From positions 124,001 to 188,000 of IMG/VR virus record IMGVR_UViG_3300042147_000020: DNA of 64,000 bases, one strand, 5' to 3'. Made by a program: the position numbers and the translations under genes. A model generated the notes under the pieces. It searched no databases. It was not told the origin of the DNA and worked only from the letters and a program-made list of their open reading frames with translations. Positions 17,778 to 57,586 of the stretch are shown here, in pieces. Position 1 is the stretch's first letter. Every line of letters starts with the position of its first letter.

Positions 17778-17813
17778 CGGCATAGAGGCTCCCTTCGGGG
17801 AGCCTCGTTATGC
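17778..17813. terminator. Bidirectional hairpin with flanking TATGC motifs
   Basis: cggcata-gaggctccc-ttcg-gggagcctc-gttatgc between convergent genes. Confidence 0.75.
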
Positions 17814-38710: not shown

Positions 38711-38813
38711 GGCTAAATTCTCTTGAAGGGCGGAACACGAGCCGGGTAATAGTATGGTGCGTATTCTTTTACAGGCAACTATAACATTCGCTGTTTTAAC
38801 AGGAGTCAACGGT

Positions 38814-41090: not shown

Positions 41091-41150
41091 TTCCTGACGG
41101 CACTGTGGTGACATTCTTAGGGGTGTCACCCCTTTAACATTTCTTTTAGG

Positions 41151-41534
41151 ATGACAACTATGGCTACCACTGCCGCTTTGCTAGCCTCACTGAAGGCTAG
41201 TGTGGATACAGCGGTTGCAACGCTTGCGGCTCTCGTAAAGCACGTGCCCAAACGCATCGTGGGTGAGTTCGTAACAGTTGCAGCCGGGGGTAACAAAGAG
41301 TACGACTTACAGACGCTGCTCGGTGTTAAACACACTGCGTTCGACAAGGACGCTGCTCTGGTCCACGTTCGGGTTAAGGATACGGTATCTGGCTCCCCTA
41401 CTCTCAACATGTATATCAACTCCGAGGCGATGATTACTCACGCCGTTCGGGCGAACCGTTACGTTCGGGTACTCAACCAGACTGACGCTTCGTTGGACCT
41501 GTACATCGGTGTTTCTGTTCCACGTCTACCTTAA
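41151..41534 (+). CDS. Small tail-fibre-associated protein
   Basis: 127-aa ORF in the fibre operon. Confidence 0.55.
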   Translation: MTTMATTAALLASLKASVDTAVATLAALVKHVPKRIVGEFVTVAAGGNKEYDLQTLLGVKHTAFDKDAALVHVRVKDTVSGSPTLNMYINSEAMITHAVRANRYVRVLNQTDASLDLYIGVSVPRLP

Positions 41535-41544
41535 GGGGTGATTC

Positions 41545-43977: not shown

Positions 43978-43999
43978 ATAATTAAGGAATAGGTTAGTC

Positions 44000-45625
44000 A
44001 TGGGCACAATCATTCTTAAGTACCCAGAAGACCCTACTGGTATCAATCCGAACAACTTGGTCATCAACGAACCTCATGACTTGGGACCTGCCCGTAACCG
44101 GGCATTCGTTCCCAACTACGGCTCCTACTTCACGGAGTCGATGATTGTCACTGAGGCGTCGACCGGTCGGGTGCTCACCAAGGGTGTTCACTACATCGCG
44201 GCACAACTGCAACAAGATGCCACTCTGGCGATGGACAAAGAGATTTGTGCTGTCGTCGTGGTAACTGATCCTGACGTTCTGGATAGCTTGCTGTTCACTT
44301 ACCAAGTTGTTGGTGGTGTGTTCAGTACTTCGGCTTCGGCCTTGGCGAAGATGATCGAGAACCTCGACATCGACGAGCGTGCAGTCGAGTGGGGTTCTGT
44401 TATTGGTATCCCTTCAGCTTTCCCTCCTGCTCCTCACTTACACGACATCGGTGACCTGTACGGTTTCGAATACCTCGTGGAAGCGTTGGATGCACTGCGT
44501 AACGCAATCCTGATTGGCGACGAAGCTGCTCATGATGAATTGCGTCAGTTCATCAACTACCAAGACGGGTTGCTCCAAGCCGCTCTGGATGACCTTCGTA
44601 GTGACTTCGAAACACACGAGAACAACAAGGCCAACCCACACGCGGTGACGAAACTCCAAGTGGGTTTGGGACAAGTCCAAGACTACGGGATTGCAACAAC
44701 CGCTGAAGCACAGGCCGGTACTGTTAACAATAAGTACATGACCCCACTGCTGACGTCTCAAGCAATCACGCAGTTGGCGTTGATCCCGCTGAACAACCAC
44801 ATCGCGGATAAAACGAACCCACACGCAACGACTAAAGCACAGGTCGGTTTGGCACTGGTAGAAAACTACCAACCTGCGACTCAAGCTGAAGCCGAAGCAG
44901 GGACTCGTAGCGATCGTTACCTCACACCGTTGACGACTAAGCAAGCCATTACCTTCCAGGCACTGGTTCCGCTGAACACGCACATCAACGATCAGACCAA
45001 CCCGCACAACACCACCAAGCTACAAGTCGGCCTCGGTAGTGTTCAGGACTACGCAATCGCGAACCAAGCCGAAGCGGAGATCGGTACCTCGAACCTGAAG
45101 TACATGACTCCCCTGCGGACTGCTAACGCCATTGCTACTCAAGCCCTTGTGCCTCTGACCACCCACATCAACAACGTCAACAACCCACACGCAACTACCA
45201 AGGCGCAAGTAGGTTTGGGTAGTGTTGATAACTACGCTACTGCCACCACGGCTGAAGCGCAAGTGGGCGCAGTGAATACGAAGTTCATGACTCCGTTGCT
45301 CACTGCTCAGGCCATCACACAACAAGCGGTTACACCGCTGAACAACCACATCAACAACCTGAGTAACCCGCACCAAGTCAGCAAGTCACAAGTTGGCTTG
45401 AGTCAGATCCCTAACGCAATCACAGCTTCACGGGCCTTCAACTCCGATGCTGCTCTGTTGACGGCCAAAGGGATGTACGACCACACAGTGTCGGCTGACC
45501 ACGATGCTCGCTACGCTCCAAAGAACACCGCTGGTGTTGACTGCTCGGTTCACTGGAACGGTTCGGGGGTGTACGTCTGGGGTGGCGGTACGTGGCGCCA
45601 GATTTGGCCTGCTCAGTGGTCGTAG
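44000..45625 (+). CDS. Tail fibre-like protein with the same repeats, phiKZ gp145-like
   Basis: N-terminal YPEDPTG..N....EPH, paralogous to 38814; four full repeats and one partial repeat; Trp-rich C-terminus. Confidence 0.75.
   Translation: MGTIILKYPEDPTGINPNNLVINEPHDLGPARNRAFVPNYGSYFTESMIVTEASTGRVLTKGVHYIAAQLQQDATLAMDKEICAVVVVTDPDVLDSLLFTYQVVGGVFSTSASALAKMIENLDIDERAVEWGSVIGIPSAFPPAPHLHDIGDLYGFEYLVEALDALRNAILIGDEAAHDELRQFINYQDGLLQAALDDLRSDFETHENNKANPHAVTKLQVGLGQVQDYGIATTAEAQAGTVNNKYMTPLLTSQAITQLALIPLNNHIADKTNPHATTKAQVGLALVENYQPATQAEAEAGTRSDRYLTPLTTKQAITFQALVPLNTHINDQTNPHNTTKLQVGLGSVQDYAIANQAEAEIGTSNLKYMTPLRTANAIATQALVPLTTHINNVNNPHATTKAQVGLGSVDNYATATTAEAQVGAVNTKFMTPLLTAQAITQQAVTPLNNHINNLSNPHQVSKSQVGLSQIPNAITASRAFNSDAALLTAKGMYDHTVSADHDARYAPKNTAGVDCSVHWNGSGVYVWGGGTWRQIWPAQWS
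44614..45400 (+). repeat. Tandem ~183-nt coding repeats (4 full + 1 partial)
   Basis: NPHAVTKLQVGL, NPHATTKAQVGL, NPHNTTKLQVGL, NPHATTKAQVGL and NPHQVSKSQVGL. Confidence 0.85.
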
Positions 45626-45685: not shown

Positions 45686-46195
45686 ATGTTGCGCAAGTTA
45701 GATGATTTCAAGTTTGACGGAATCACGGAGTCTACTCTACGGGTGGATGACGTTCTCGCAAGTCACTTTCCTTACGAACAGGGTTTGGTGAAGTACGTAG
45801 TAGGTGGGCGTTCGATGGACGCCCACAGTCCTTGGGACGCAGTTCAACATGAGGACTGCGTGTTTAAGGTTGAGGGTTACGATAAACTCAACCTTAAACT
45901 TTTTGACGAGTGTCGCTATCTAGCGGATCACTTCAAACATATCGGACCGGTGACCTGTCATCTGTTCAAGTCTCCTCTCGGAGCAACCAGTTTCCCAGCA
46001 CACACTGATCCTGATGACGTAGTGTTACTTATGGTTAGTGGTGCTAAGCAGTTTGAAACCGACGACGGTGTGATCACTCTCAATGAGGGTGAGATCCTGT
46101 TTATTCCCGCTGGTTCTAAACACCGAGCAATCAACACAGAGAGTTCTCTGATGTTGAGCTTTGGGTTAGAGCGTTTTCTAGTTGAGAAACTGTAG
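45686..46195 (+). CDS. JmjC/cupin-fold 2OG-Fe(II) hydroxylase (YcfD/ROXA-like)
   Basis: SFPAHTDPDDV..L.VSG.K...L.EGEILFIP.G..H.A provides the HxD...H triad plus Lys. Confidence 0.8.
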   Translation: MLRKLDDFKFDGITESTLRVDDVLASHFPYEQGLVKYVVGGRSMDAHSPWDAVQHEDCVFKVEGYDKLNLKLFDECRYLADHFKHIGPVTCHLFKSPLGATSFPAHTDPDDVVLLMVSGAKQFETDDGVITLNEGEILFIPAGSKHRAINTESSLMLSFGLERFLVEKL

Positions 46196-47233
46196 ATGAC
46201 GTTTAAGACAATCTTTGTGAAGACCACGGGAACGTGTAATCTGAACTGCGATCATTGCTTCACCAACGGTAAGTCCGGTGACAAGACTCACTTTGATCCT
46301 GTGCAAACGGGTCAGTGGGTTAAAGAATTCATTGCTAAGTACTCACCCGACACACACCACCACTTGGAGCTACACGGCGGTGAACCATTCTTGGTCCCGG
46401 TGCGGGTGTTGACTCAGTTTGCTGCACAGTTTCGTGACTACGACAACGTGTCGATGTGTGCGAACTCTAACCTGACCTTTAAGTTGACTCCAGAGATCCT
46501 CTCATTCATTGACGAGTACTTGGGTCAACAAGTGGGCACCAGTTGGGATTACTGGATTCGCTGGAGTAATCAGAAGCAGTTTGACCTGTGGAAGAGCAAC
46601 TTAGCGGTCTTGAAAGCTCGGGGTGTCAGGATCTGTTTGAAAGTGTCTGTCAGCAGGCCGCTGGTGGCTTCTACAGCCGATTGGTTCCTCGACCAGATGG
46701 ATGCACTGGGTGTCGATGAAGTAGCCTTAGAACGCATTACAGTCGGTGGGAATTCTGTGGTCAACATGGACGTCTTTCCCGACAATGAGGAGCAGGACAA
46801 TTGGTACCTAGCCCTCTACAAGCGTTATAAGGAACGTAATCCTTCTTATGACATTAAAACCCTAGACCTGATTGAGCAGAAGCTTAAGTTAGGTATGGTG
46901 AAAGTCGACACCAATTGTCGTAATTGCGAACAAAACGTGGTGACGATCAATTCAAACGGTACCTTGGGAGGCTGCCCTAACGTAGCCACCGAACACCGAC
47001 ATGCTACCATACAAGAACCTGTGAAGGTCTTTCTGGAGTCTGACGGGCGTGTTAATGAAATAGTCAAAGAACTTGATTTCTCTGAGTCTTGTGTGCGTTG
47101 TGACGTATTCGATCTATGTGGTGGCGACTGTCACCGACTACCTTGGCAAGAAGGTCGATGTGGCGGTTTAAAGAATACCCTCCGACACCTGTCAGGCAGA
47201 TCCACACAATCCAATTTAATTCTGAAGGTGTAG
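46196..47233 (+). CDS. Radical SAM/SPASM protein 1
   Basis: CNLNCDHC, HGGEPF, and C-terminal CRNC..GGC..CVRCDVFDLCGGDC..C. Confidence 0.92.
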   Translation: MTFKTIFVKTTGTCNLNCDHCFTNGKSGDKTHFDPVQTGQWVKEFIAKYSPDTHHHLELHGGEPFLVPVRVLTQFAAQFRDYDNVSMCANSNLTFKLTPEILSFIDEYLGQQVGTSWDYWIRWSNQKQFDLWKSNLAVLKARGVRICLKVSVSRPLVASTADWFLDQMDALGVDEVALERITVGGNSVVNMDVFPDNEEQDNWYLALYKRYKERNPSYDIKTLDLIEQKLKLGMVKVDTNCRNCEQNVVTINSNGTLGGCPNVATEHRHATIQEPVKVFLESDGRVNEIVKELDFSESCVRCDVFDLCGGDCHRLPWQEGRCGGLKNTLRHLSGRSTQSNLILKV

Positions 47234-47237
47234 CGTT

Positions 47238-47789
47238 ATGGCTAACTTAGCAAAAGCCGATGTTGCGTATTATGCGAATGTCCTCATTCGCAACAATGCC
47301 AACGCAGGCATCTCTTGGGGTACTAACAACTATCCAGCAGGGGCTCTACCGGAATGGTTCGGTGGCACAACTGCTGGGCGTGGGGAGATCTTCGGGGCTG
47401 GTGATTTGGCAAACCCACCCACTGGTCGTCAGGTCAGTTCTGCGCTCAACAATTTTGCAGCGATGTTTGCTGCTATCCGTGCACTGCGTATCGTTATCTA
47501 CTATCGCAAGACGGGCTCTAAGAACACCACGGCGGGTGACTACACGTATGTCGCTTATGACGGCACCGCGATTGCACACACGGCTTGGGCGGTAGGTGGC
47601 GTGGGTAACGACGTACCGCCGGTACTTACCAGAGGGGTTCCAGCTCGAGCTGGGGACGTCTGGTCCTACTGTGATCGCCTCTGGCAGCGCTACAACCAAC
47701 TGTGTCGCGCGACAGCCATGACGGCGTACAACACCATTTGCCACACCAGTTGCCATGGCGCTTGCCACGGTAGTCGCGGTCGTCGTTAA
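47238..47789 (+). CDS. 183-aa protein with C-terminal (CHxx)3-RGRR; candidate substrate of the rSAM/oxygenase cluster
   Basis: Gly/Ala/Thr/Asn-rich body ending ICHTSCHGACHGSRGRR, with no enzyme motif. Confidence 0.65.
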   Translation: MANLAKADVAYYANVLIRNNANAGISWGTNNYPAGALPEWFGGTTAGRGEIFGAGDLANPPTGRQVSSALNNFAAMFAAIRALRIVIYYRKTGSKNTTAGDYTYVAYDGTAIAHTAWAVGGVGNDVPPVLTRGVPARAGDVWSYCDRLWQRYNQLCRATAMTAYNTICHTSCHGACHGSRGRR

Positions 47790-47809
47790 TTAACCAAGGC
47801 GTGTTACCC

Positions 47810-48538
47810 ATGGAAAAGATTGTCACTACAGCCCCGATCCCAATTGCTGTGTTGAAGCGCAAGTTCACCGAAGACATCCACTTCGCCATCGACTACGCCA
47901 ACAGTAAGTTCAAGGGTAAGACCCTGATCACTTACCTCAGTAACCTCAACATCAAGTGCAACCTCATGTTGCAAGACGTTGAAGAAGCATTGGCGTTGAC
48001 TGCCGAATACCTCTACATTCCAGCCGTGGCTTCAATCCCCGATCTGGAAGACGTGGTGATCAACTTGCTGTTGGCCTATCAAGGTAAACAGAACTGGTTG
48101 AATTTTGACATCGACCCATTCGTTGCCGAGCACCGTGAAATCATCGAACTGTGGATCAAGCGTATCAACTCGCTTCCGCTGTTCGCCTTACACTGCTCCG
48201 GTCTGTACAAAGAACACGTCGACACCTTCCCTAAAGACGACGACAAGTCGATTGCAGGGATCAACTTCGTCCAACTGATCAAGCACCCATTGTTCCCACT
48301 GTTGGTTGCCAACATTGACGAGTGCGACTTCAGTTACAACGAAATGTGGTTCAACGAGTATGTATTTGCTGGTTCGAACCTGTTCTCGTTCTTCGCCGTT
48401 AAAGAGAACCCATTGTACCTTGGGTTGATCTCACAACTGGCACCTGATCCTGAAGACAGGGAGATTGATCAAATCTTGGCAGACACAATTGCCGAGTACA
48501 ACGCTGTCATGGGAGAATCCAATGTTCCACTTATTTAA
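47810..48538 (+). CDS. Hypothetical protein in the rSAM cluster
   Basis: ~242 aa, overlapping the next gene. Confidence 0.7.
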   Translation: MEKIVTTAPIPIAVLKRKFTEDIHFAIDYANSKFKGKTLITYLSNLNIKCNLMLQDVEEALALTAEYLYIPAVASIPDLEDVVINLLLAYQGKQNWLNFDIDPFVAEHREIIELWIKRINSLPLFALHCSGLYKEHVDTFPKDDDKSIAGINFVQLIKHPLFPLLVANIDECDFSYNEMWFNEYVFAGSNLFSFFAVKENPLYLGLISQLAPDPEDREIDQILADTIAEYNAVMGESNVPLI

Positions 48539-49586
48539 CGACGTCTACGTTCAGTCTGAGATCTTCATGGCGTCGGACTTGGACCGCATCAACATCTCCC
48601 CGACGACTGGTTTTGAGTACCACAAGACTTTCGCTGATGACCCCGAGTTGACCCAACTGGGTTTCGCCAAGAGTCTTGATGACTTCACTGGGGAGAAGTT
48701 CCTAGAGCTGTTGCGTCTGGCAGCTAACAACCCCACCAAGGTCTTTGTGTTTGTCGATTCGGCAACCTACTCACGACTTTACGCGATTCAACTCAAGGCC
48801 CTGTTCCCGAATATCTCGTACGAACACTTCAAGTTCTTCTTCGTTTGTAAGAAGGCAGTGATCGACGGTCGGGCTGCTACGTCCTACGCACCAAGCATTG
48901 ATCCTCGTGCCGGGGCTAAAATCAACAACGCAGTCGTGGACGAGCTATACCACAAAGACGACTCCGAATTGATCGAAGCGATGGCTGACGTACTGAACGA
49001 CGAAGGGGTTAACCTCTCCCTCGAATGGAACGTCCTGAAGTTGTTGACCGACGGTGAGATCGGCACTATCCCTGATAAGGTCAAGAACCTCGTCAAGCGG
49101 GTAGCGCTGTCAGTAGTCCACGAGACTCTGGGTTCGGTAGGGTTCTCGGTCACTGATCCTCGTAACTGGGAGTTCTTGGGTTGTGACGCTGACACCCTGT
49201 TGGAATACGACAGTATCTTCCAGGGCTGCACCAACCTCGGTTACATGAACAACCCTGCGTTCTTGGGCAAGTCGACCTTGGGCTTGAAGATGCCGGACCA
49301 GTGGATGATCGAGTTGATCAAACAAGTCCGTGAGTTCCTCGTGTTGAGCGGTGAAGTCAAGTCGCATCTGTTCATGGGCGTGATCCTTGAACTGTACGAG
49401 GGTGGCTTCAAGTACGAAACTGCTGAGGACTGCATCGCTGCGGTAACGAGCGTGTTTGCTAACGCTGAACGGACCGTCAGTCTGCCACACAGCGACCTCG
49501 GTAAGTACGACGAGAACTTGATCCGCTTCTTGCTACGTAGCGATCGCAAAGAAATCACTGCACTCCGGGAAGGTTCGCAATGGTAG
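48522..49586 (+). CDS. Hypothetical protein in the rSAM cluster
   Basis: ATG at 48522 (MFHLFND) with a GGAG RBS; acidic and helical. Confidence 0.7.
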   Translation: MFHLFNDVYVQSEIFMASDLDRINISPTTGFEYHKTFADDPELTQLGFAKSLDDFTGEKFLELLRLAANNPTKVFVFVDSATYSRLYAIQLKALFPNISYEHFKFFFVCKKAVIDGRAATSYAPSIDPRAGAKINNAVVDELYHKDDSELIEAMADVLNDEGVNLSLEWNVLKLLTDGEIGTIPDKVKNLVKRVALSVVHETLGSVGFSVTDPRNWEFLGCDADTLLEYDSIFQGCTNLGYMNNPAFLGKSTLGLKMPDQWMIELIKQVREFLVLSGEVKSHLFMGVILELYEGGFKYETAEDCIAAVTSVFANAERTVSLPHSDLGKYDENLIRFLLRSDRKEITALREGSQW

Positions 49587-50593
49587 GATTAATACCGCTA
49601 GTGGATGTCCTCCAAGACAAAAAGGGGGCAACTAAAGAAGCTCACCTGATTCTGTTCGAGAAGTGCAACCTGCGGTGTTCGTTCTGCCACCAGGATCACG
49701 ACTCCGAAGTAGGGATGGAAGCCGAAGCCATCATGCAGAAGGCTCTCACCCTCATTGAGACTGGAGACCCAGAAGCTCCAATCGTGATCAACCTCACAGG
49801 CGGGGAGCTGTTCTCGGACAACATCCCCGATTGGATGTTCGGTTACTACCTGTCGGCTGGACAACTGCTACTGCGTCACTTCAAGCGGGCTAAGTTGGTC
49901 TGGGGTACAAACCTGATCTACAGTGACCTCTTCCGAGTAATGCGGTTGATCAGCATGCTGCGGGCCGAGGCTAGTAAAGATCAGAACGTATGTTTGGCAA
50001 CGTCCCACGACCCAGCGGGACGCTTCACTGTAGGTAATCGGGAACTGTTTCTACGGAACCTGATGGTCGTCAAGCCTTACGTTGAAACTGTGAACGTGGT
50101 GATCACTCGACAGAACATCCAGTTGTTCCTCAGTGGTAATGAGGGTAAAGAGTTTGACTGGTTGTGTCGTAACTTCGATGTGTATTTCGATCACTACATT
50201 CCCTCCGAGCGTTACCAAGAGCACCAACCGACTGAGTCAGCTATCAGTCAGCTCTACTTAGCCCTCGACAAGAAGTACCCAAACTCCTACCCCATCAAAG
50301 CGTGGAAGGAGAACCGTTTCAATGACACCACCTGTCGCTCTACGAAGATCATCAACAAAGATGGCGTAGTGACAACGTGTTGGTCCGAAGCGGGTAAGGA
50401 CTCTGTCTTGGACGAAGGGGCTGGCTTGAAAGCCAAGAACGAAGCCGAAGAGCGTTTCCTTGAGCACTACGGTTGTATGTCGTGTGAGTACTTCCAACGA
50501 TGTGGCTTACGGTGCTTCTTGCACCACAGCTTCATTGAAGGTACGACTACCGAATGTGAAATCAAAAAGATGTTCGATCAGATACTGGTCTGA
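49580..50593 (+). CDS. Radical SAM protein 2 with a C-terminal Cys cluster
   Basis: CNLRCSFC, TGGELF and CMSCEYFQRCGLRC..C. Confidence 0.9.
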   Translation: MVGLIPLVDVLQDKKGATKEAHLILFEKCNLRCSFCHQDHDSEVGMEAEAIMQKALTLIETGDPEAPIVINLTGGELFSDNIPDWMFGYYLSAGQLLLRHFKRAKLVWGTNLIYSDLFRVMRLISMLRAEASKDQNVCLATSHDPAGRFTVGNRELFLRNLMVVKPYVETVNVVITRQNIQLFLSGNEGKEFDWLCRNFDVYFDHYIPSERYQEHQPTESAISQLYLALDKKYPNSYPIKAWKENRFNDTTCRSTKIINKDGVVTTCWSEAGKDSVLDEGAGLKAKNEAEERFLEHYGCMSCEYFQRCGLRCFLHHSFIEGTTTECEIKKMFDQILV

Positions 50594-50598
50594 AGTGT

Positions 50599-50625
50599 CG
50601 GGGTGGGTAACACCACCCCGGTTTT
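50599..50625 (+). terminator. Hairpin inside the rSAM cluster
   Basis: cggggtgg-gtaaca-ccaccccg-gtttt directly before ATG 50626. Confidence 0.55.
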
Positions 50626-51741
50626 ATGTTCGTCATTAAGGAGTCCTCTGTGGACCTTATCATTAAACCCACCGTGGCGTGCAATTTCAAGTGTACTTTC
50701 TGCTCCAGTACTAAATTGTCCGAGGACCCTAAAGAGATCGTAGAGCTAGAGGAAATTGAAGCTTTCATCAAGCGGTTTCCTAACACCAACACCGTGATCG
50801 TGAACGGTGGTGACCCTTTGATGATGCCTCCGAGTTACTACTGGTCGCTGATTGACATCTTGGACCGTCATAACTGTCCTGCCACGATTGCGTTTACCAC
50901 TAACCTGTGGGCGTTCTATAAAAAGCCTGAGCTGTGGGTAGACTTGTTTCGTCATCCGCGTGTGGGCGTTGCTACTTCGTTTCAATACGGTGACAAACGA
51001 CTCAAGGGTGACTTGAAACCGTTCACCGAAGCTGAATTCTGGGCCTGCTCTGATCTGATGTTGGAGCTGGTGGGTTATCGACCGACGTTCATTGCGGTCA
51101 TTGACAAAGACAATGAAGACTCTGTACTCGACACGGTGTTACTGGCTGCTCGTATGGGAGTAGAGGTCAAGCTGAATCACGCACTGGCTTCAGGTCCAGA
51201 GGTGGACTATAAAGGTGTGGTGATGGGGAACCAAAACAAGTTCTTCACTCAAGCTGACATCTACCGACACTACTTGGCCATTTATGACGCTGGGTTAGAG
51301 GAACACGAGTACAACACTAAACAGATGACCCGTCGTCTGCGTAATGGTGCAACCACCTGTCCGTTGGCTCGTAACTGCGACCAACACATCCGTGCATTAC
51401 AACCGGGTGGTGGTAACTACTTCTCGTGTGGAGCTTTCGGGGATGACAATGAATACCCTATCGACTTTCAGCGTGAGATGTCTGGCGAGTTCTTTACTCC
51501 GTTAGAGAGTCAACCTGAACTGTTCAGTATGAAAGACGCCTGTGCTGCGTGTCCGATGTTTGCGATCTGCAACGGGTGCAAGAAGACCATTGCCGACACC
51601 AAACGTTTGGGCCTAACTGAACACCACTGTCGCACAATGAAATCGTTGGCTCCTCGGATCATCGAGGCTAACGGTCTAACGGGTCAGTTAGAACCCACTC
51701 CGTATGAAGATGAAACTCCCGTTTTGATTGCCCGAGGTTAA
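50626..51741 (+). CDS. Radical SAM/SPASM protein 3
   Basis: CNFKCTFC, NGGDPL and TTCPLARNC..FSCG..CAACPMFAICNGC..HC. Confidence 0.92.
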   Translation: MFVIKESSVDLIIKPTVACNFKCTFCSSTKLSEDPKEIVELEEIEAFIKRFPNTNTVIVNGGDPLMMPPSYYWSLIDILDRHNCPATIAFTTNLWAFYKKPELWVDLFRHPRVGVATSFQYGDKRLKGDLKPFTEAEFWACSDLMLELVGYRPTFIAVIDKDNEDSVLDTVLLAARMGVEVKLNHALASGPEVDYKGVVMGNQNKFFTQADIYRHYLAIYDAGLEEHEYNTKQMTRRLRNGATTCPLARNCDQHIRALQPGGGNYFSCGAFGDDNEYPIDFQREMSGEFFTPLESQPELFSMKDACAACPMFAICNGCKKTIADTKRLGLTEHHCRTMKSLAPRIIEANGLTGQLEPTPYEDETPVLIARG

Positions 51742-51742
51742 A

Positions 51743-52714
51743 ATGAAGCCTGTTGTCCTCTCCGTGAATCCATGGTACTTCTGTAACTTTCGCTGCTCGT
51801 TCTGTTATCTGACCGAACAACAACTCAGTGACCGTAAACTATTACCGCTAGAACGGTTGGCGGAGATGGTAGACGAAGTACAAGCCGCAGGTTACACCGT
51901 TGAACACATCGACATCTATGGGGGTGAAGTGCTGTTACTGCCCGCTGATTACCTCAACGGGATGAAGCAAGTCTTCCACGACCGAGGGATTGACGATCTG
52001 TGTCTGATCACCAACCTGTCTCTGGTGAATGACGTAGCACTCGATGATGACTACGAGTTGTCGGTGTCGTACGATTTCGAAGCCCGTGAGAAACATGAGA
52101 AAGTCTTTGACAACATGCTTGCCTTACCTCGACAGTTTAACGTGTTGAGTTTGGTGGGTCGTAAGTTCTTGGACGTCGTTACTCCAGACGAATACGTACA
52201 CACCCTGAACCTGCTCTCCCAGCTCTGGTGTGTGGAACTTAAGCCGTACAGCGAGAACCAAGCCAACGCTGACGCAGTGTCGTTCAAAGAGTTCGAGGAC
52301 TTCGTGTGGGCAGTGATCAAACACCCTGACCGTGAGTTCTATCTGGAGAACGAATCCCTGATTCGCAAAGCGGCTGAAACCAAGACTCGTAATGCGTTCA
52401 GTGACAATCACATCTACATCACCCCTGCGGGTCGTTACGCGGTACTGGAGTTTGATGCCAACGACCGTGAGTTCTTCTTGGAGCTGGATGACTTAGCTGG
52501 TTATCAAGCCTGGTGTGCACTTGAAAAAGAGCGGGTTACCGCCAATGAGTTTTGCAGTAAGTGTCAATTCAAAGGCGGGTGTTTATCCGAACACCTAAGA
52601 GACGTTAGGTCGTTAGAGAACTCCTGTAACGGGTTCCACGACCTGTTAGTGAGGTGGGTAGATGAAGGTAGTCCAACACAGACAGAGACTCGAGATCACG
52701 CTCGATCTGTTTAA
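51743..52714 (+). CDS. Radical SAM protein 4
   Basis: CNFRCSFC, YGGEVL and CSKCQFKGGC..SC; ATG at 51743 with a GAGG RBS. Confidence 0.9.
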   Translation: MKPVVLSVNPWYFCNFRCSFCYLTEQQLSDRKLLPLERLAEMVDEVQAAGYTVEHIDIYGGEVLLLPADYLNGMKQVFHDRGIDDLCLITNLSLVNDVALDDDYELSVSYDFEAREKHEKVFDNMLALPRQFNVLSLVGRKFLDVVTPDEYVHTLNLLSQLWCVELKPYSENQANADAVSFKEFEDFVWAVIKHPDREFYLENESLIRKAAETKTRNAFSDNHIYITPAGRYAVLEFDANDREFFLELDDLAGYQAWCALEKERVTANEFCSKCQFKGGCLSEHLRDVRSLENSCNGFHDLLVRWVDEGSPTQTETRDHARSV

Positions 52715-53678
52715 AGGTTGTGGTCATTCCTGCGGTGGCTGCATGATTGATAAAAGTTTGGGTGGAGACGTGAAAGATCTCCCCGAACTCTTAGCCCTGA
52801 TTCAAGAAATGGTCGGGGTGGGTTACGTAGCGTTTGACCTCGGTGTAGGACCGACGGACTACATGACTGCTGATAACCGTCTCGAAGTGATGCAGAACCG
52901 AACCTTCCAAGAGATGGCTCAACAGTTTCATCAGGTAACATTCAACGCAGCCTTCCTCGACACTAACCTGCTCAACTACGGGGTGATGTGTTACGAGATT
53001 GATTGTGCAGTACCAGACAAGCCGATTCGCTTTCTGATCCCAGCCGTACCGGCTCATTTCAAGAATGAGAAGTTCGGCTTGATGATTAAAGAAAAGTTGG
53101 AGTACATCAAAAAGAACCTGATCGTAGCTCGACTGAACGAAGCAGGTTTTGTGGTGAACTGTACACAGGAAACTGTGGACGAGAAGTTTGAGGAGCACCT
53201 ACGTAATGGGTTTGATATTGAATTCGTGGTGGACAAAGACGACATCCTCACCATCCCTTACGGACGAGCCCCAAACAAAGACTTGCTGGTGGCGCAGAAT
53301 GTTCGTCGAGTGTCTCACCGAATCAGTTCTTTCTATGCGGGGCTGAATGGGGAAGACGAACGTCGACGTAACCCTGATCTCCACTACGACACTGGGACAA
53401 TGGTTAACCTGTTGTACACCGGGGGTAAACTGTACTGGGTTCCTTTCCTCAAAGACGACTGTCCGTTCATAGACGACGACTTTGTGATCCCTCGACCTTG
53501 GACTATGGCTAACCTGTTAGAAGCCCGTAATCGCGCTCGTGATAGCTCCTTGGACTATCTGGAAGGCAGTGAGTGTATGGAGTGTCCTCACCTCGGGAGC
53601 TGTGCCGAGAAAGGCATCACCAGCATCATGCAGAAGTTGTCGATTCGGGATTGCTTAGTGGGGTTGGCCGATGTTTAA
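52662..53678 (+). CDS. Divergent radical SAM-like protein 5
   Basis: CGHSCGGC; GPTD in place of GGEP; CMECPHLGSC..DC. Confidence 0.75.
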   Translation: MKVVQHRQRLEITLDLFKGCGHSCGGCMIDKSLGGDVKDLPELLALIQEMVGVGYVAFDLGVGPTDYMTADNRLEVMQNRTFQEMAQQFHQVTFNAAFLDTNLLNYGVMCYEIDCAVPDKPIRFLIPAVPAHFKNEKFGLMIKEKLEYIKKNLIVARLNEAGFVVNCTQETVDEKFEEHLRNGFDIEFVVDKDDILTIPYGRAPNKDLLVAQNVRRVSHRISSFYAGLNGEDERRRNPDLHYDTGTMVNLLYTGGKLYWVPFLKDDCPFIDDDFVIPRPWTMANLLEARNRARDSSLDYLEGSECMECPHLGSCAEKGITSIMQKLSIRDCLVGLADV

Positions 53679-54717
53679 CGAATATGGCGTGATCTCTGTC
53701 AACCTCACGATGGAGATCCTAAAAGGCTGTGGGTTCAGTTGTAGTGACTGTGCCGTACAGAAAGACTTCACTACCTCAGACATTCCTCCAGAGGACTCAC
53801 AGGACCTCCTAGGGCTACTGGATGACCTGCGTGTCAATGAAGTTCGTCTGTTTGAGTTCACTGTAGGTCCAACTGACTTTATCAGTGCCCAGAATGGCTT
53901 CGAGACCTTTAAGCATCCGTTAGTCTTGGGATTAGCTGAACGGTTTGAATCCATGACGTTGTCGTTGGCAATGTTGAGTGACAACCGCTTGGTGGAATTG
54001 GGTGGGGTGATTGACCGTATGATCCCCGAGAAGAAGTTCCGGTTGGTGATCCCTGCCACCCTAAAGAACTTACAGAAACCCAAGTACGTGGAAGCCTTAC
54101 GTCGCCGAGTACACTTGTTGCGCGACAGCCTCCATTCTGCGAAGTTCTACCAGATCTACTTGAACTCCAACATGGTACAGGAGAACCTGAACGAACTGTC
54201 GTACGAGACGGTGTCGAACTCAGGGGCGGCTGACTTAGGGGTTCGTACCACGTTGGAGCACGGCTTCGGTCATGCCCGAGCAGGCTTTCAAAACTTGTTT
54301 AACCGTGATCGGTTCATCTACGACCTGAAGCTCTACGTGGAGCGCAGTAAGGTGCTGAAGGACACCCGGTACCAACGTAAGCTGATTCCGATAACGACCG
54401 ATGCGTTAGAGCTGACGTACCGTGCAGGCAAGCTTTATTACACACCGGTGGTGATTGAGAAGTTCCACATCTTTGATCCGGTGTTTGAGATCCCTAAACC
54501 GTGGACAGCACAAGCGGTACTCGATTTCAAAGAGCAGTTGTACTACCGCATGTTAGAAAAATACGTGGTACACCCATTATGTAGAGATTGTTGCTTTGTC
54601 AACACCTGTGCTTTGGGGGATCATCATGTGGTCATGGATTACCTGAAACACGATGAGTGTTTGACCGACATGAAGAACCGCCACGATATGGATCGAAAGG
54701 ATACCCACGGTGAGTGA
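53671..54717 (+). CDS. Divergent radical SAM-like protein 6 (paralog of protein 5)
   Basis: CGFSCSDC, GPTD, Y..GKLY, IP.PWT and CRDCCFVNTC..EC. Confidence 0.75.
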   Translation: MFNEYGVISVNLTMEILKGCGFSCSDCAVQKDFTTSDIPPEDSQDLLGLLDDLRVNEVRLFEFTVGPTDFISAQNGFETFKHPLVLGLAERFESMTLSLAMLSDNRLVELGGVIDRMIPEKKFRLVIPATLKNLQKPKYVEALRRRVHLLRDSLHSAKFYQIYLNSNMVQENLNELSYETVSNSGAADLGVRTTLEHGFGHARAGFQNLFNRDRFIYDLKLYVERSKVLKDTRYQRKLIPITTDALELTYRAGKLYYTPVVIEKFHIFDPVFEIPKPWTAQAVLDFKEQLYYRMLEKYVVHPLCRDCCFVNTCALGDHHVVMDYLKHDECLTDMKNRHDMDRKDTHGE

Positions 54718-55138
54718 ACATAAAGAGTATCAACGCCTGTACGCCCAACTGGTCACAGATCACCCCGATGACTTTGCCAAGATGGAGATCGTCGAGTCTG
54801 AGGAGCTGGTGGAGAACGCTAAGCACTACTTCCGCGAAGCCACCTTCCCGCTGATCTATCCAGCGAAGTCAATGGCTGTCGCTGTAATCTACGCCCTGTT
54901 ACTGGAAGAGACTTACGGGTTACATCCGTTTGACTCCCTTAAAGACCCAGACCTATTCTTAGGTCAAGACCCATACTTCCGTCCGTATGACCAACATCCC
55001 CGTGAATACGATCAATTGATCTGGTGGGTGGCGGAACAACCGAACTGGAAAGAAATGGGCTGGGCACCAAAGACAGTTGAATACTTCTACCTTGAGTGCA
55101 CTGAAGCTGGTATCAGTAAAATCAACGAAGGGGTTTGA
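54710..55138 (+). CDS. Hypothetical protein in the rSAM cluster
   Basis: 142 aa with a GTG start overlapping the upstream stop. Confidence 0.65.
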   Translation: MSEHKEYQRLYAQLVTDHPDDFAKMEIVESEELVENAKHYFREATFPLIYPAKSMAVAVIYALLLEETYGLHPFDSLKDPDLFLGQDPYFRPYDQHPREYDQLIWWVAEQPNWKEMGWAPKTVEYFYLECTEAGISKINEGV

Positions 55139-55139
55139 A

Positions 55140-55697
55140 ATGAAATATGTTGAACCGTGGAGCACTCAATTAGCCCACTTCAATGTCGCAGACTTAGTCG
55201 ACTTGGGTGCCTTGCGTGACGAGATCTTCAATCTACACTGTTTGACCGAAGGGGACGACCCAGGACAGAAGTGGATCACCTCTGAGTTCGTACCTGAAAT
55301 TATCCGCATGCGTGATGAACTGATTACCCCACGGGTGATTCAGTACGCCAAAGAGTTGTGGGACTACGACATCCCCAAGATTGAAGTAGAGACCTCGGGT
55401 AAGTGGATTCCTGAAGGTGAAGGACTGTTCCCCCACGTTCATGGTGGTTCGTGTATCAGTACGATCTTTTACCCCTCACCAACTAACTTCGGGTTGAGTT
55501 TTTTCGACCCTCGTTCCAATGCTGGCCGGGGTTATCCGAAAGAGATCCGTGATCGGTTCTTTAAAGCCTTCCCGATTGTTCCTGCGGCGGGGGACATTTG
55601 GATCTTCCCAAGTTACTTACAGCACAGTGTGTCGCACGTCCAAGAGAACGTCCGGTTGAGCATGCTGTGTGAATACTACTTGCGGGAGAACGTTTGA
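55140..55697 (+). CDS. Putative 2OG-Fe(II) oxygenase 1 (TIGR02466-like)
   Basis: PHVH...STIFY...FDPR...P..GDIWIFPSYLQHSV...RLS. Confidence 0.82.
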   Translation: MKYVEPWSTQLAHFNVADLVDLGALRDEIFNLHCLTEGDDPGQKWITSEFVPEIIRMRDELITPRVIQYAKELWDYDIPKIEVETSGKWIPEGEGLFPHVHGGSCISTIFYPSPTNFGLSFFDPRSNAGRGYPKEIRDRFFKAFPIVPAAGDIWIFPSYLQHSVSHVQENVRLSMLCEYYLRENV

Positions 55698-56263
55698 TGG
55701 AACTGTTCCGTCCTTGGCAAACCAGTATTGCCAGAATCAACGTGGCTGAGTTGTGTGACTTGGATCAGCTTACTCAAGAGATCCTAATTGTCTCTGCCGG
55801 CGGCACTGTAGCCGTCCCACAAGACGCTACACGCGACGATCCGTTCGTAGGTGGCATCGTTACTCTACGTGACGACGTAATCACCCCCAGAGTCATGGAG
55901 TACATTCGCACAGAGTACGGTCTCAACTGTGATCCTGAAACGGTTGCTATGGAAACGTGGGGGATGAACATCGCTCCCGGTAGTGACTTGGAAACACACA
56001 TCCACGGTTTGTCCAACTTCACGACGGTGTTCTACCCCTGTGAGTCAGACGCTCGCTTAGTACTGGTTGATCCTCGTTTGAATGCAGCACGAGGGTTCTC
56101 TAAGTCTTTGCGTGACCGTAACTTCGGTAACCTACGAGTTGACCCTAAACCCGGAGACTTGTGGATCTTCCCAAGCTTCGTCCCCCATTCTGTGACGTCA
56201 GTAGGTAACGAGTTCCGCCTGTCTTTGGTGAACGATTACTTCCTAGACCCCACCCTCGATTAA
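55697..56263 (+). CDS. Putative 2OG-Fe(II) oxygenase 2
   Basis: THIH...TVFY...VDPR...PGDLWIFPSFVPHSV...RLS. Confidence 0.82.
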   Translation: MELFRPWQTSIARINVAELCDLDQLTQEILIVSAGGTVAVPQDATRDDPFVGGIVTLRDDVITPRVMEYIRTEYGLNCDPETVAMETWGMNIAPGSDLETHIHGLSNFTTVFYPCESDARLVLVDPRLNAARGFSKSLRDRNFGNLRVDPKPGDLWIFPSFVPHSVTSVGNEFRLSLVNDYFLDPTLD

Positions 56264-56274
56264 GAGACCTGAAC

Positions 56275-56829
56275 ATGGAACTGATTCAACCTTGGAACAC
56301 GTCGATCCTTAAAGCGAACGTGTCCCACATGTGTAACGTGGAAGCGATTGCCGATGAGATCCTGTCACTACACAGTCTCTCCCCACAACAGTCCACCACG
56401 CAGTACAAAATCACCCCAGAAGAGTTCCCAGCTCTGTGTGACTTCCGTGACCGGGTGGTAACTAACCTGGTGAAAGAATTCGTCAAACAAACGATGCGTT
56501 TCGACCTGACACAGTTCACCGTCGATACGTTCGGTAAGTGGTTCGAGAAAGGCATGGATCTTTCTCCGCACACTCACGGTAGCACTGGGATCACCTCTGT
56601 GTTCTACCCGGCTGACTACAAGTCGGGAATGACCGTGTACGATCCGCGTGGTAATGCTTGCCGTGGCTACCCGCGTCAAATCCGGGACGACTACTTCGCT
56701 CCCTTTTACGTCTACCCCAAGGCTGGTGATTTGATCATCATGCCGTCGTTCTTGCAACACTACGTCCCCACCGTAGAAGACGACCTGCGTCTGTCGTTGA
56801 TCAACGATTACATGTTCCCAAGCGTATAA
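56275..56829 (+). CDS. Putative 2OG-Fe(II) oxygenase 3
   Basis: PHTH...SVFY...YDPR...AGDLIIMPSFLQHYV...RLS. Confidence 0.82.
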   Translation: MELIQPWNTSILKANVSHMCNVEAIADEILSLHSLSPQQSTTQYKITPEEFPALCDFRDRVVTNLVKEFVKQTMRFDLTQFTVDTFGKWFEKGMDLSPHTHGSTGITSVFYPADYKSGMTVYDPRGNACRGYPRQIRDDYFAPFYVYPKAGDLIIMPSFLQHYVPTVEDDLRLSLINDYMFPSV

Positions 56830-56833
56830 ACAG

Positions 56834-56863
56834 AGGAGGGGTTCGTCCCCTCCTTTTATGCCG
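56834..56863 (+). terminator. Hairpin plus TTTTATGCCG closing the cluster
   Basis: aggagggg-ttcgt-cccctcct-tttatgccg. Confidence 0.75.
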
Positions 56864-56908: not shown

Positions 56909-57586
56909 ATGTTTGAAGTCGTGGATAAGGGCGCTATTAAAGAGAAACAGCGCAAGTTGAAAGAGCTGGGCCTGTATGAAGGGAATGTGGACGGTATCTG
57001 GGGACCTCTGAGTCAAGCGGCTTGGGATAAGACTCAAGGTGACAAAGTTGTGTCTGCTCCGTTTGATACCACTCGGATCATCTGGGCCACCAAGGTCTCC
57101 AAAGAGTTCATCCTCAAAGTACGGGACATCGCCAAACGTCTTGAGATGCCCACAGAGGGCTCTAACTGGTTGATGGCGTGTATGGCCTTCGAGACCGGTG
57201 AAACCTTCTCACCGACGATCAAGAACGGTGCTGGCGCTCCTTACTACGGACTGATCCAGTTCGGTGAAGCAGCAGCCAAAGATTGTGGCACTACGGTGGC
57301 CGCTCTGGTAAAGATGACTGCTGAGCAACAGCTCGACTACGTATACAAGTTCTTCAAGCCGTACACCGGTAAGCTGAAGACCCTCAGCGACGTTTACTCT
57401 CGCATCATCTGGCCAGTGGCCGTGGGTAAGTCAGAAGACTACGTGATCTTTGACACGAAGGTACGTCCTACTGCGTACGTTCAGAACAAGGGTCTGGACA
57501 TCAACAAGGACGGCCTCGTCACCAAAGCTGAATGTGCGGCGAAGGTCCAAGAAAAATACGTGCGTGGACTGAAGTTCGTCGCCTAA
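56909..57586 (+). CDS. Modular endolysin: N-terminal peptidoglycan-binding segment plus a lysozyme-like/transglycosylase domain
   Basis: Q..LKELGLY.G.VDGIWGP.S..A (PG_binding_1-like), then MAFETG.TF.P...N....YGLIQF. Confidence 0.8.
   Translation: MFEVVDKGAIKEKQRKLKELGLYEGNVDGIWGPLSQAAWDKTQGDKVVSAPFDTTRIIWATKVSKEFILKVRDIAKRLEMPTEGSNWLMACMAFETGETFSPTIKNGAGAPYYGLIQFGEAAAKDCGTTVAALVKMTAEQQLDYVYKFFKPYTGKLKTLSDVYSRIIWPVAVGKSEDYVIFDTKVRPTAYVQNKGLDINKDGLVTKAECAAKVQEKYVRGLKFVA

Follow-up and report, generated by a model that had tools for sequence, protein, structure and literature searches.

A cassette of radical-SAM and iron oxygenase genes in jumbo phages may tailor the C-terminal tail of a small virion protein

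The 64,000-nt window analysed here (positions 124,001 to 188,000 of IMG/VR record IMGVR_UViG_3300042147_000020, a giant phage) contains, between positions 45686 and 56829, 14 co-oriented, abutting or overlapping genes on the + strand (g1–g14). They encode one small cupin oxygenase, four clear radical-SAM/SPASM-twitch enzymes, two divergent radical-SAM-like paralogues, three PF13759 oxygenases, three proteins of unknown fold and a 183-aa protein, g3, with a Cys/His-repeat tail. With starts refined from orthologue conservation, the successive junctions are +0, +4, +11, −17, −7, +32, +1, −53, −8, −8, +1, −1 and +11 nt, and the minus-strand ORFs inside the island are short and fully overlapped by these genes. 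The existence of the island, which an initial annotation had proposed from sequence alone, is confirmed.

The island lies downstream of, and in the same gene string as, two genes of structural type. The first (41545–43977, +) encodes an 810-aa virion structural/tail-fibre-like protein (phrog_11065, virion structural protein, 1e-156, with further tail-fibre PHROG hits), and the second (44000–45625, +) encodes a 541-aa tail-fibre-like protein (phrog_2163 and several tail or tail-fibre PHROGs), homologues of which sit directly upstream of the cassette in the phiKZ-like subgroup. The gap of 60 nt between the stop at 45625 and the g1 start codon (ATG 45686, preceded by a GAGGGA ribosome-binding site) holds no hairpin. 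In contrast, a GC hairpin followed by TTTATGCCG lies at 56834–56863 (+), after the g14 stop, and closes the island. TATGCCG occurs 8 times in the window against 3.5 expected, and each copy follows a hairpin after a stop codon. These boundaries agree with the initial annotation, which however missed a 10-bp GC hairpin between g6 and g7 (50597–50622, +), followed by TTTATG (to 50628), where the ATG is the g7 start. This is probably an internal terminator or promoter-like junction, and relatives carry insertions exactly here, such as an HNH gene plus two DHFR genes in RSF1, and gaps in two other loci (L017 and L021).

Six proteins carry an N-terminal CxxxCxxC and C-terminal Cys clusters, both of which are conserved in orthologues. 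The g2 protein (46196–47233, +) conserves C14/C18/C21, GGE and 8 C-terminal Cys, scores 30 bits on the SPASM model TIGR04085 (cut-off 27), and its profile hits a cyclopropyl synthase (8vpo), anSME, CteB and ChlB. The g6 protein (49580–50593, +; phrog_1802) conserves C29/C33/C36, GGE and 7 C-terminal Cys, and hhalign gives 99% to g2, although no PDB sequence hit was found. The g7 protein (50626–51741, +), encoded by the most conserved gene of the cassette, scores 47.5 bits on Pfam Radical_SAM; a search returned 1358 clusters at E<=1e-10, the top 120 being at 59% identity or more, and its profile aligns full-length to anSME (4k37), indicating an anSME-like architecture. Whereas g2, g6 and g7, with 7–8 C-terminal Cys, show the full SPASM pattern, g8 (51743–52714, +; Radical_SAM 40.3 bits) has a single, twitch-like 4-Cys cluster, and its best PDB relative is the peptide epimerase YydG (8e-9). 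The paralogues g9 (52662–53678, +; C20/24/27), specific to the phiKZ-like subgroup, and g10 (53671–54717, +) have 4 conserved C-terminal Cys, no Pfam or NCBIfam hit, and only 67% hhalign probability to g6. We therefore regard these two proteins as probable, but not proven, radical-SAM enzymes, so that the six enzymes of the initial annotation comprise four clear and two probable members. The DT01 orthologues are annotated as radical SAM by CDD.

Four putative oxygenases flank this set. The g1 protein (45686–46195, +), a small cupin Fe(II) oxygenase, passes Pfam JmjC_2 (36 bits against a cut-off of 22; 5e-9), but only over profile positions 88–121, and otherwise looks like a generic small cupin (Cupin_2, 1e-8) for which only generic cupins were found in the PDB. 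It conserves HxD...H and a Lys (H106, D108, H146 and K121, at least 90%). The analogy with JmjC Arg/His hydroxylases drawn in the initial annotation thus rests on a partial HMM match. The paralogous g12 (55140–55697, +), g13 (55697–56263, +) and g14 (56275–56829, +) proteins pass PF13759 (2OG-FeII_Oxy_5) with 37.5, 35.7 and 31.8 bits, respectively (37.5 against a cut-off of 27 for g12), but score only 18–27 bits on TIGR02466, to which they had been likened and whose cut-off is 62.5. HxH...D...H...R is conserved in g12, hhalign gives 100% between g14 and g12, and the only PDB relatives of g14 are uncharacterised (3bvc, 2rg4). Of the remaining proteins, g4 (47801–48538, +; phrog_20767) is present in all loci with flank, and its AF2 model (pLDDT 91.5) has no PDB fold or sequence match. 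The g5 gene (48522–49586, +), whose likely start is M20 of the listed ORF (M20 and H22 are conserved), has no family hit and occurs in many but not all cassettes, and g11 (54710–55138, +; phrog_20737, 1e-37), present in nearly all complete cassettes, has no meaningful PDB hit.

The g3 gene (47238–47789, +) contains the only CHxxCH motif in all six frames of the window. Its AF2 model (pLDDT 86.5) shows a predicted folded body of about 165 aa with no PDB fold match and a 16-residue C-terminal tail of low confidence (pLDDT about 55), C-H-T-S-C-H-G-A-C-H-G-S-R-G-R-R (residues 168–183, encoded at 47739–47786, +). The protein belongs to a phage-restricted family of at least 729 clusters at 50% identity, in which the body diverges to about 25% identity but the last 16 residues stay (C-H-x-S)x3-R-x-R-R. 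Although overall identity falls to 24–30%, C168, C172, H173, C176, H177, R180, R182 and R183 are invariant and H169 is over 90% conserved in the 80–82 sequences aligned, and 130 of 146 family representatives at 50% clustering end in (CHxx)3RxRR. The same tail is found in Atu_ph07 and Phosso, which are not phiKZ-like. Only 5 loci were found in 185,579 species genomes, all of them MAG or short contigs with phage synteny.

In order to determine whether g3 and the enzymes are linked, we compared loci seeded on either gene. Among 83 loci seeded on g3, every one with enough flank has the cupin, g2, g3, g4, (g5), g6, g7, g8, g11 and an oxygenase in the same order and on the same strand, g2 always being the gene immediately before g3. 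In the reverse test, 65 of 69 informative loci, out of 79 seeded on g7, carry g3; the other four have rearranged cassettes with no g3 in the fetched DNA. The cassette occurs in phiKZ-like phages, Atu_ph07-like phages and aquatic jumbo phages, usually just after a tail-fibre-like gene (in three lineages), and lies beside baseplate genes.

A link with the particle comes from the Atu_ph07 homologue of g3, gp170, a published virion protein that was detected with 8 peptides and 35% coverage. Despite its verified mass of 31.89 kDa, gp170 peaks in band 1 at the top of the gel, whereas other proteins of about 30 kDa peak in band 8, although this position could reflect aggregation. None of the enzymes was detected in virions. 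On the other hand, the RSF1 record labels neighbouring genes 'virion structural protein' but the g3 homologue ORF071 only 'hypothetical'.

Since paired Cys and His residues are classic metal ligands, six Fe-S enzymes need cluster and electron supply and tail-fibre-like genes are always nearby, we considered the possibility that the tail is not modified but binds a metal or Fe-S cluster, g3 serving as a cluster or electron carrier or as a scaffold while the fibres or other virion proteins are the real substrates. We consider this unlikely. The fibre-like proteins have only 2–5 scattered Cys and no shared motif, and they differ between lineages, so nothing points to them as substrates. A carrier would not be expected in virions or at the top of a gel, nor to multiply its motif five-fold (see below), and metal binding alone does not explain the invariant RxRR end and the Ser/Asn positions, even though a CHxxCHxxCH string could simply bind metal.

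One contig has five tandem core copies with the same enzymes, and another has two tandem g3 genes, a substrate-like variation that also supports the reading of g3 as the substrate favoured below. Such multi-core variants are typical of RiPP precursors, raising the possibility that g3 is a true RiPP precursor, its body acting as a very long leader and the modified (CHxS)n core being released to act on the host or on competitors, for example as a metallophore, a signal or an inhibitor of a host defence. The C-terminal, disordered position of the core in the model and the RiPP maturases among the closest enzyme relatives are consistent with this reading. However, no leader cleavage, protease, exporter or recognisable RRE was found in the cassettes examined, the body is a conserved, confidently folded domain of 165–300 aa, gp170 is found in purified virions, and the cassette is embedded in structural gene strings, so that this explanation also appears unlikely.

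Alternatively, the island might make or modify a nucleotide, a DNA base or a cofactor, with g3 an unrelated structural gene that happens to be linked. RSF1-type phages have two dihydrofolate reductase genes inside the cluster, and the radical-SAM cores give weak viperin, MoaA and QueE hits. However, the DHFR and HNH genes sit exactly at the g6/g7 junction, an insertion hot-spot, and are absent elsewhere; the viperin and MoaA hits cover only the shared core; the SPASM-type auxiliary clusters and the full-length anSME similarity point to peptide substrates; and linkage to g3 is near-universal across lineages. We regard this reading as very unlikely.

The enzymes have no N-terminal extension, and their nearest solved relatives are peptide or protein maturases (anSME, CteB, ChlB, a cyclopropyl synthase and YydG), but all matches to named families are far below the curated cut-offs and the chemistry therefore cannot be read from homology. 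In the HXS antiphage system (PMC13128918), HxsA, a folded protein rather than a short peptide that carries His-Xaa-Ser repeats flanked by basic residues, is matured by the radical-SAM enzymes HxsB and HxsC plus the small protein HxsD, and the g3 tail can be read as C-[H-x-S]-C-[H-x-S]-C-[H-x-S]-R. However, HXS is bacterial and defensive, its effector is periplasmic and binds peptidoglycan, and it has no interleaved Cys and only two radical-SAM enzymes; g3 matches no HxsA or HxsD model, and the weak enzyme hits to HxsB and HxsC (about 23 bits) are far below the cut-offs (268–370), while the phage product is a virion protein. Triceptide three-residue cyclophane synthases (YhhB, HaaB, MscB; PMC11002830) are SPASM enzymes that link an aromatic residue i to C-beta of residue i+2, with precedents for C2(His)-C-beta(Ala/Arg) and Phe-C-beta(Ser). 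YhhB and FxsB are the top NCBIfam hits for g2, and ChlB is among its PDB hits, but the scores (43–48 bits against cut-offs of 370–445) cover mainly the first 85 residues, triceptide precursors are short peptides with leaders, and a cross-link in g3 would be by analogy only. The ranthipeptide/SCIFF and QhpD-type thioether maturases (CteB, PapB and QhpD, the last acting on the protein subunit QhpC) mature Cys-rich C-terminal cores with Cys every fourth residue, and CteB and PapB are among the g2 hits; g3, however, does not hit the SCIFF model, no Asp, Glu or Thr acceptor pattern is conserved, and His is as invariant as Cys, which thioether formation alone does not explain. Finally, anSME acts on a protein and has no RRE domain, the g7 profile aligns full-length to it, SPASM domain included, and the last g3 repeat is an invariant C-x-x-x-R, like the sulfatase C-x-P/A-x-R. 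Nevertheless, the E-value is only 3e-5, TIGR03942 scores 35–43 bits against a cut-off of 349, the Pro/Ala position is variable in g3, and g3 is not a sulfatase.

The same cassette has already been noticed as multi-radical-SAM clusters in the jumbo phages pPa_SNUABM_DT01, RSF1/RSL2, S13 and 332-Vera, DT01 and RSF1 being syntenic gene for gene. These papers (PMC8541153, PMC12390700, PMC11898562) list the genes, call their number unusual and suggest DNA repair or a metabolic boost, but give no substrate, conserved cassette or function, and no paper that we found describes the pathway proposed here.

The interpretation offered in the initial annotation is partly supported. The island behaves as one dedicated protein-tailoring pathway, and the 47238 protein is its best substrate candidate, as had been proposed; the fibres as alternative substrates are not supported, a receptor-binding or metal-binding tip stays a hypothesis, the strict features of a RiPP pathway are absent, and the statement that no nucleotide-modification or cofactor genes accompany the island in the window rests on that annotation alone.

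We favour, with moderate confidence, a dedicated post-translational maturation pathway whose substrate is the exposed C-terminal tail of g3, on a small folded protein that ends up in the virion. What the analysis shows directly is that g3 and the enzymes form one conserved cassette across very distant jumbo phages, that only the tail of g3 is invariant, that the cassette sits in tail-fibre or baseplate gene strings and that one homologue is a virion protein running anomalously high on SDS-PAGE; the modification itself, its chemistry and its role are inferred rather than observed. In this view, the universal radical-SAM/SPASM enzymes g2, g6, g7 and g8, plus the lineage-specific g9 and g10, would abstract hydrogen atoms from tail residues and install covalent changes there. 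The candidate reactions, in order of preference, are His(C2)-to-Ser(C-beta) three-residue cyclophanes and/or Cys thioethers (g2, g6), Cys-to-formylglycine-type oxidation at the invariant C-x-x-x-R (g7) and epimerisation (g8), while the cupin g1 and the PF13759 oxygenases would add hydroxyl groups. That g4, g5 and g11 are non-catalytic substrate-presenting partners is a guess. The finished tail would be rigid, cationic and possibly metal-binding or cross-linking, and would act in the tail-fibre/baseplate region, either in attachment or penetration or as a very stable joint. Phages thus appear to use peptide-antibiotic-style chemistry to finish a part of their own particle.

The island occupies positions 45686 to 56829 on the + strand, where 14 abutting or overlapping genes (g1 to g14, numbered in order) follow three tail-fibre-like or virion structural genes (38754–45625). 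The layout described in the initial annotation was confirmed. The 60-nt gap after the last fibre gene holds only a ribosome-binding site, and the island ends at a GC hairpin followed by TTTATGCCG. That element occurs 8 times in the window against 3.5 expected, always right after a stop codon and on both strands (positions 17778, 21320, 25075, 32136, 37459, 56857, 59169 and 61435). These hairpins followed by (T)TATGCCG look like combined terminator and late-promoter elements of this phage. In addition, a strong, similar hairpin followed by TTTATG, which the initial annotation did not list, was detected between g6 and g7 (50597–50628), raising the possibility that the island comprises two units. 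Relatives carry insertions exactly at this point, for example an HNH endonuclease and two dihydrofolate reductase (DHFR) genes in phage RSF1 (locus L002, 10700–11989; L numbers denote the loci retrieved for comparison). We considered these DHFR genes as a possible part of the pathway but rejected this reading, since they sit at an insertion hot-spot and are lineage-specific. The GC content of the island matches that of the rest of the window. The window belongs to a phiKZ-like jumbo phage, with an internal-head-protein hit and phiKZ-related phages as its closest isolates, and is part of an uncultivated 238,799-bp IMG/VR contig; a near-identity DNA search of the phage collection found nothing. 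Downstream of the island, the gene called an endolysin (56909–57586) matches the C-terminal part of baseplate-hub proteins (phrog_196, phrog_4928) and has a weak peptidoglycan-binding hit, and may encode a virion-associated lysin.

In order to assess the enzyme assignments, we compared each protein with its orthologues and with curated profiles. All six candidate radical-SAM proteins carry an N-terminal CxxxCxxC motif in which each Cys is at least 90% conserved (g2, C14/18/21; g6, C29/33/36; g7 and g8, C19/23/26; g9 and g10, C20/24/27). Against PF04055, whose gathering threshold is 29.5 bits, g7 (47.5) and g8 (40.3) passed, whereas g2 (26.3) and g6 (19.2) fell short; however, g2, g6, g7 and g8 are paralogues that all hit phrog_1802 and are 96–99% related by hhalign, and each keeps a GGE/GGD motif. 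C-terminal Cys residues for auxiliary 4Fe-4S clusters are conserved in number as expected for SPASM enzymes (7 Cys) in g2 (8), g6 (7) and g7 (8), while g8, g9 and g10 have 4 each, which for g8 is twitch-like; only g2 passed TIGR04085, at 30 bits against a cut-off of 27. Although g9 and g10 are paralogues of each other with the same Cys layout, they have no HMM support, with no PF04055 hit and only 67% probability to g6, and we regard them as no more than probable family members. The g1 product is a small cupin with a conserved HxD...H motif and Lys (H106, D108, H146 and K121); the JmjC type calls for an HxD/E...H triad with a 2OG-binding Lys. Its JmjC (PF08007) score of 36.2 bits exceeds the cut-off of 22, but only 34 profile positions align and the PDB returned only generic small cupins. 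The g12, g13 and g14 products passed PF13759 (37.5, 35.7 and 31.8 bits against 27) but not TIGR02466 (27, 27 and 18 against 62.5); their only solved relatives are uncharacterised, and we found no member of this family with a tested function.

The remaining cassette proteins, g4, g5 and g11, matched nothing informative. Profile searches of the PDB found nothing for g4 and only spurious hits to designer repeat proteins for g11, and a confident model of g4 (pLDDT 91.5) had no PDB fold match. Against NCBIfam, g3, g4 and g11 had no hit at all, and g5 had only a chance-level TrbH hit (E 0.0089, 16 bits against a cut-off of 160).

The substrate candidate g3 (47238–47789, 183 aa) is the only CHxxCH-bearing ORF in six frames of the window. 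Its family is large, with 80 clusters at 90% identity in one search and 729 clusters at 50% identity at E<=1e-3 in the exhaustive search. Whereas identity in the body drops to about 25%, the last 16 residues are fixed as [V/I]-C-H-[A/S/T]-[S/N]-C-H-x-x-C-H-x-x-R-x-R-R-end, and 130 of 146 representatives end exactly this way. Homologues in Atu_ph07 and Phosso, which are 296–306 aa long and belong to a non-phiKZ lineage, end the same way. The AF2 model of g3 is confident (pLDDT 86.5, pTM 0.81) except for the tail, at about 55, and its predicted fold matched nothing in the PDB. Only uncharacterised viral relatives appeared in the fold search: the BFVD entries A0A8S5USV2, A0A8S5USJ7 and A0A8S5USJ8, proteins of 504–660 aa from an uncultured myovirus, share the fold of the g3 body, which may therefore be a reusable structural module. 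Natural variants look like substrate evolution. A 4.3-kb contig filed under a Dysosmobacter segnis assembly, probably phage DNA, encodes a g3 homologue with five tandem CHxS cores (L087, 3–359) next to enzymes nearly identical to those of the window, another contig has two tandem g3 genes, and others have two or four repeats.

To test whether g3 and the enzymes travel together, we retrieved 79 viral loci around g3 homologues and added four isolate genomes. Every locus with enough flank has the same gene order and strand (cupin, g2, g3, g4, (g5), g6, g7, g8, g11, oxygenase), with g3 lying directly after g2 in all loci. The g9 and g10 genes and the extra PF13759 copies are specific to the phiKZ-like subgroup, and other lineages instead interleave prolyl-hydroxylase-type oxygenases. 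In one aquatic phage contig, two adjacent flavin-dependent 'tryptophan halogenase' genes (phrog_2928; L054, 3247–6406) lie upstream of the cassette and may encode further tailoring enzymes. In the reverse test, 79 loci were seeded on g7, of which 65 carry g3, 10 are cut off upstream and four are rearranged, with no g3 in the retrieved DNA. In L146 (whole locus), L144, L159 and L140, the cassette consists of cupin, g2, g7, g8 and g11 with g6 elsewhere, and g3 may lie elsewhere in those genomes. The initial annotation had named clusters that routinely lack the CHxx protein as a finding that would count against it; this is not what the g7-seeded loci show. Among 185,579 species genomes only five loci appeared, all on MAG or short contigs with the phage gene order. 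A 241,743-bp contig filed as Streptomyces sp. CHB9.2, the size of a jumbo phage genome, carries both g3 and g7 homologues and is likely a phage genome in a bacterial assembly.

One lineage (L117 and L168–L170) has a reduced cassette that keeps only a fibre-like gene, an oxygenase, g2, g3, g4, g5, g7 and a PF13759 protein (L117, 6564–11643; L168, 8317–14566), with only two radical-SAM enzymes. Its g3 has four CHxS repeats but a Gly-rich end instead of RxRR. This suggests, although weakly since it rests on a single lineage, that g2 and g7 serve the repeats, while g1, g6, g8 and g11 go with the Arg-rich end.

As to the destination of the product, detection in purified particles is known only for a homologue. 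The Atu_ph07 virion proteome (PMC6102473, Table S5) lists gp170, whose mass of 31.89 kDa we verified, detected with 8 unique peptides and 35% coverage, whereas none of the neighbouring enzymes is listed as a virion protein. The gp170 protein is most abundant in gel band 1, where proteins of 75–140 kDa run, while other proteins of about 30 kDa peak in band 8. This is consistent with a covalently or very stably bound form, but aggregation is not excluded. In the aquatic lineages the cassette follows a giant structural protein and a tail-fibre-like gene, and in a reduced variant it lies beside PAAR and muramidase baseplate genes. Against a virion location, the RSF1 record does not flag the homologue ORF071 as a virion protein. 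Virion proteomics for RP31 and AP-J-162 gave no usable information on g3 homologues. The Ralstonia phages RP12 and RP31 carry a different, only analogous radical-SAM cluster right after two fibre-like (YomR) genes, comprising a 537-aa radical-SAM protein, an 'arylsulfatase regulator' Fe-S protein, a MoaA-like protein and an MgoB-like protein (PMC5468394, supplementary tables); g7 does not hit it.

Profile searches against solved structures were used to ask what the enzymes might do. The g7 profile aligned full-length to the anaerobic sulfatase-maturating enzyme (anSME), g2 hit a cyclopropyl synthase, anSME, CteB and ChlB, g8 hit the peptide epimerase YydG, and g6 hit nothing. All NCBIfam hits of the enzymes are far below cut-off, the best for g2 being the cyclophane-forming YhhB and FxsB. 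The tail can be read in three ways, among which sequence alone does not allow a choice: as three His-x-Ser units, for which His-C2 to C-beta cyclophanes and Phe to Ser-C-beta links are precedented (PMC11002830); as a core with Cys at every fourth residue, like the thioether peptides; or as a C-x-x-x-R site in its last repeat, like the sulfatase motif. The anSME profile TIGR03942 gave only 43 bits (g2) and 35 bits (g7) against a cut-off of 349, and although C-x-x-x-R is invariant, the third position, Pro or Ala in the anSME substrate motif C/S-x-P/A-x-R, varies among G, S, C, N, A, T, V and F. The nearest functional analogue is the newly described bacterial HXS defence system, in which a protein with His-x-Ser repeats is matured by two radical-SAM enzymes and a small partner, with an addition of +8 Da (PMC13128918). 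The g3 tail has three H-x-[S/N/A] units, each preceded by Cys, but this is a resemblance only. HMM membership fails: HxsB reached 23.8 bits against 370 and HxsC 23.3 against 267.9, and g3, g4, g5 and g11 had no relevant NCBIfam hit.

Other readings were considered and dropped. A heme-attachment role for the overlapping C-x-x-x-C-H strings was rejected because the overlapping sites cannot all be used and no heme lyase or export signal is present. A viperin or MoaA-like nucleotide role for g8 was rejected because those matches cover only the shared core, whereas YydG scores much better. PADLOC gave only generic viperin-core hits, so there is no sign of a defence or anti-defence family. With its precursor-like gene next to the presumed maturases and its invariant tail, the cassette resembles a RiPP pathway. 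However, the leader-removing protease, export function and RRE domain of a RiPP pathway in the strict sense were not recognised: no protease, transporter or PqqD-like hit was found in the window cassette or in the variants examined, and the enzymes start at the cluster motif.

The interpretation in the initial annotation was supported in part. Its central inference, a dedicated tailoring pathway acting on the 47238 protein, is strongly supported by comparative evidence, whereas action on the fibres and a role as a receptor-binding tip remain conjecture. What the comparisons establish is the cassette's conserved order and the invariance of the g3 tail; that the tail is modified, by what chemistry and to what end is inferred. 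The cassette has been noticed in isolate genomes only as 'many radical SAM genes' (PMC8541153, PMC12390700, PMC11898562), and within the searchable literature we found no description of the tail motif or of the cassette's substrate, conservation or function. A more far-reaching reading, which we hold only tentatively, is that jumbo phages of several unrelated lineages may share a phage-only pathway in which four to six radical-SAM enzymes and several iron oxygenases would build a polycyclic, cross-linked, aldehyde-bearing or metal-binding 'warhead' on the C-terminus of a tail-fibre- or baseplate-associated virion protein. This would be the first case of RiPP-type radical chemistry used to manufacture a structural part of a virus particle, and the chemistry on a Cys-His-x-Ser repeat may itself be new.

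Radical-SAM/SPASM maturases are known from bacterial peptide natural products, from a few enzyme cofactors and, very recently, from an antiphage effector. Here the same enzyme type, in four to six paralogues together with two kinds of iron oxygenase, is tied to a single putative virion protein across hundreds of phage lineages, and one 183-aa protein plus defined enzymes makes a simple test system. If the tail is indeed modified, it would define a new substrate class, the (CHxS)n-RxRR tail, and would probably involve new enzyme chemistry on a Cys/His repeat. It would also explain the puzzling piles of radical-SAM genes reported in jumbo phage genomes, and would add a new principle in virion assembly, the enzymatic, cofactor-expensive finishing of a tail component.
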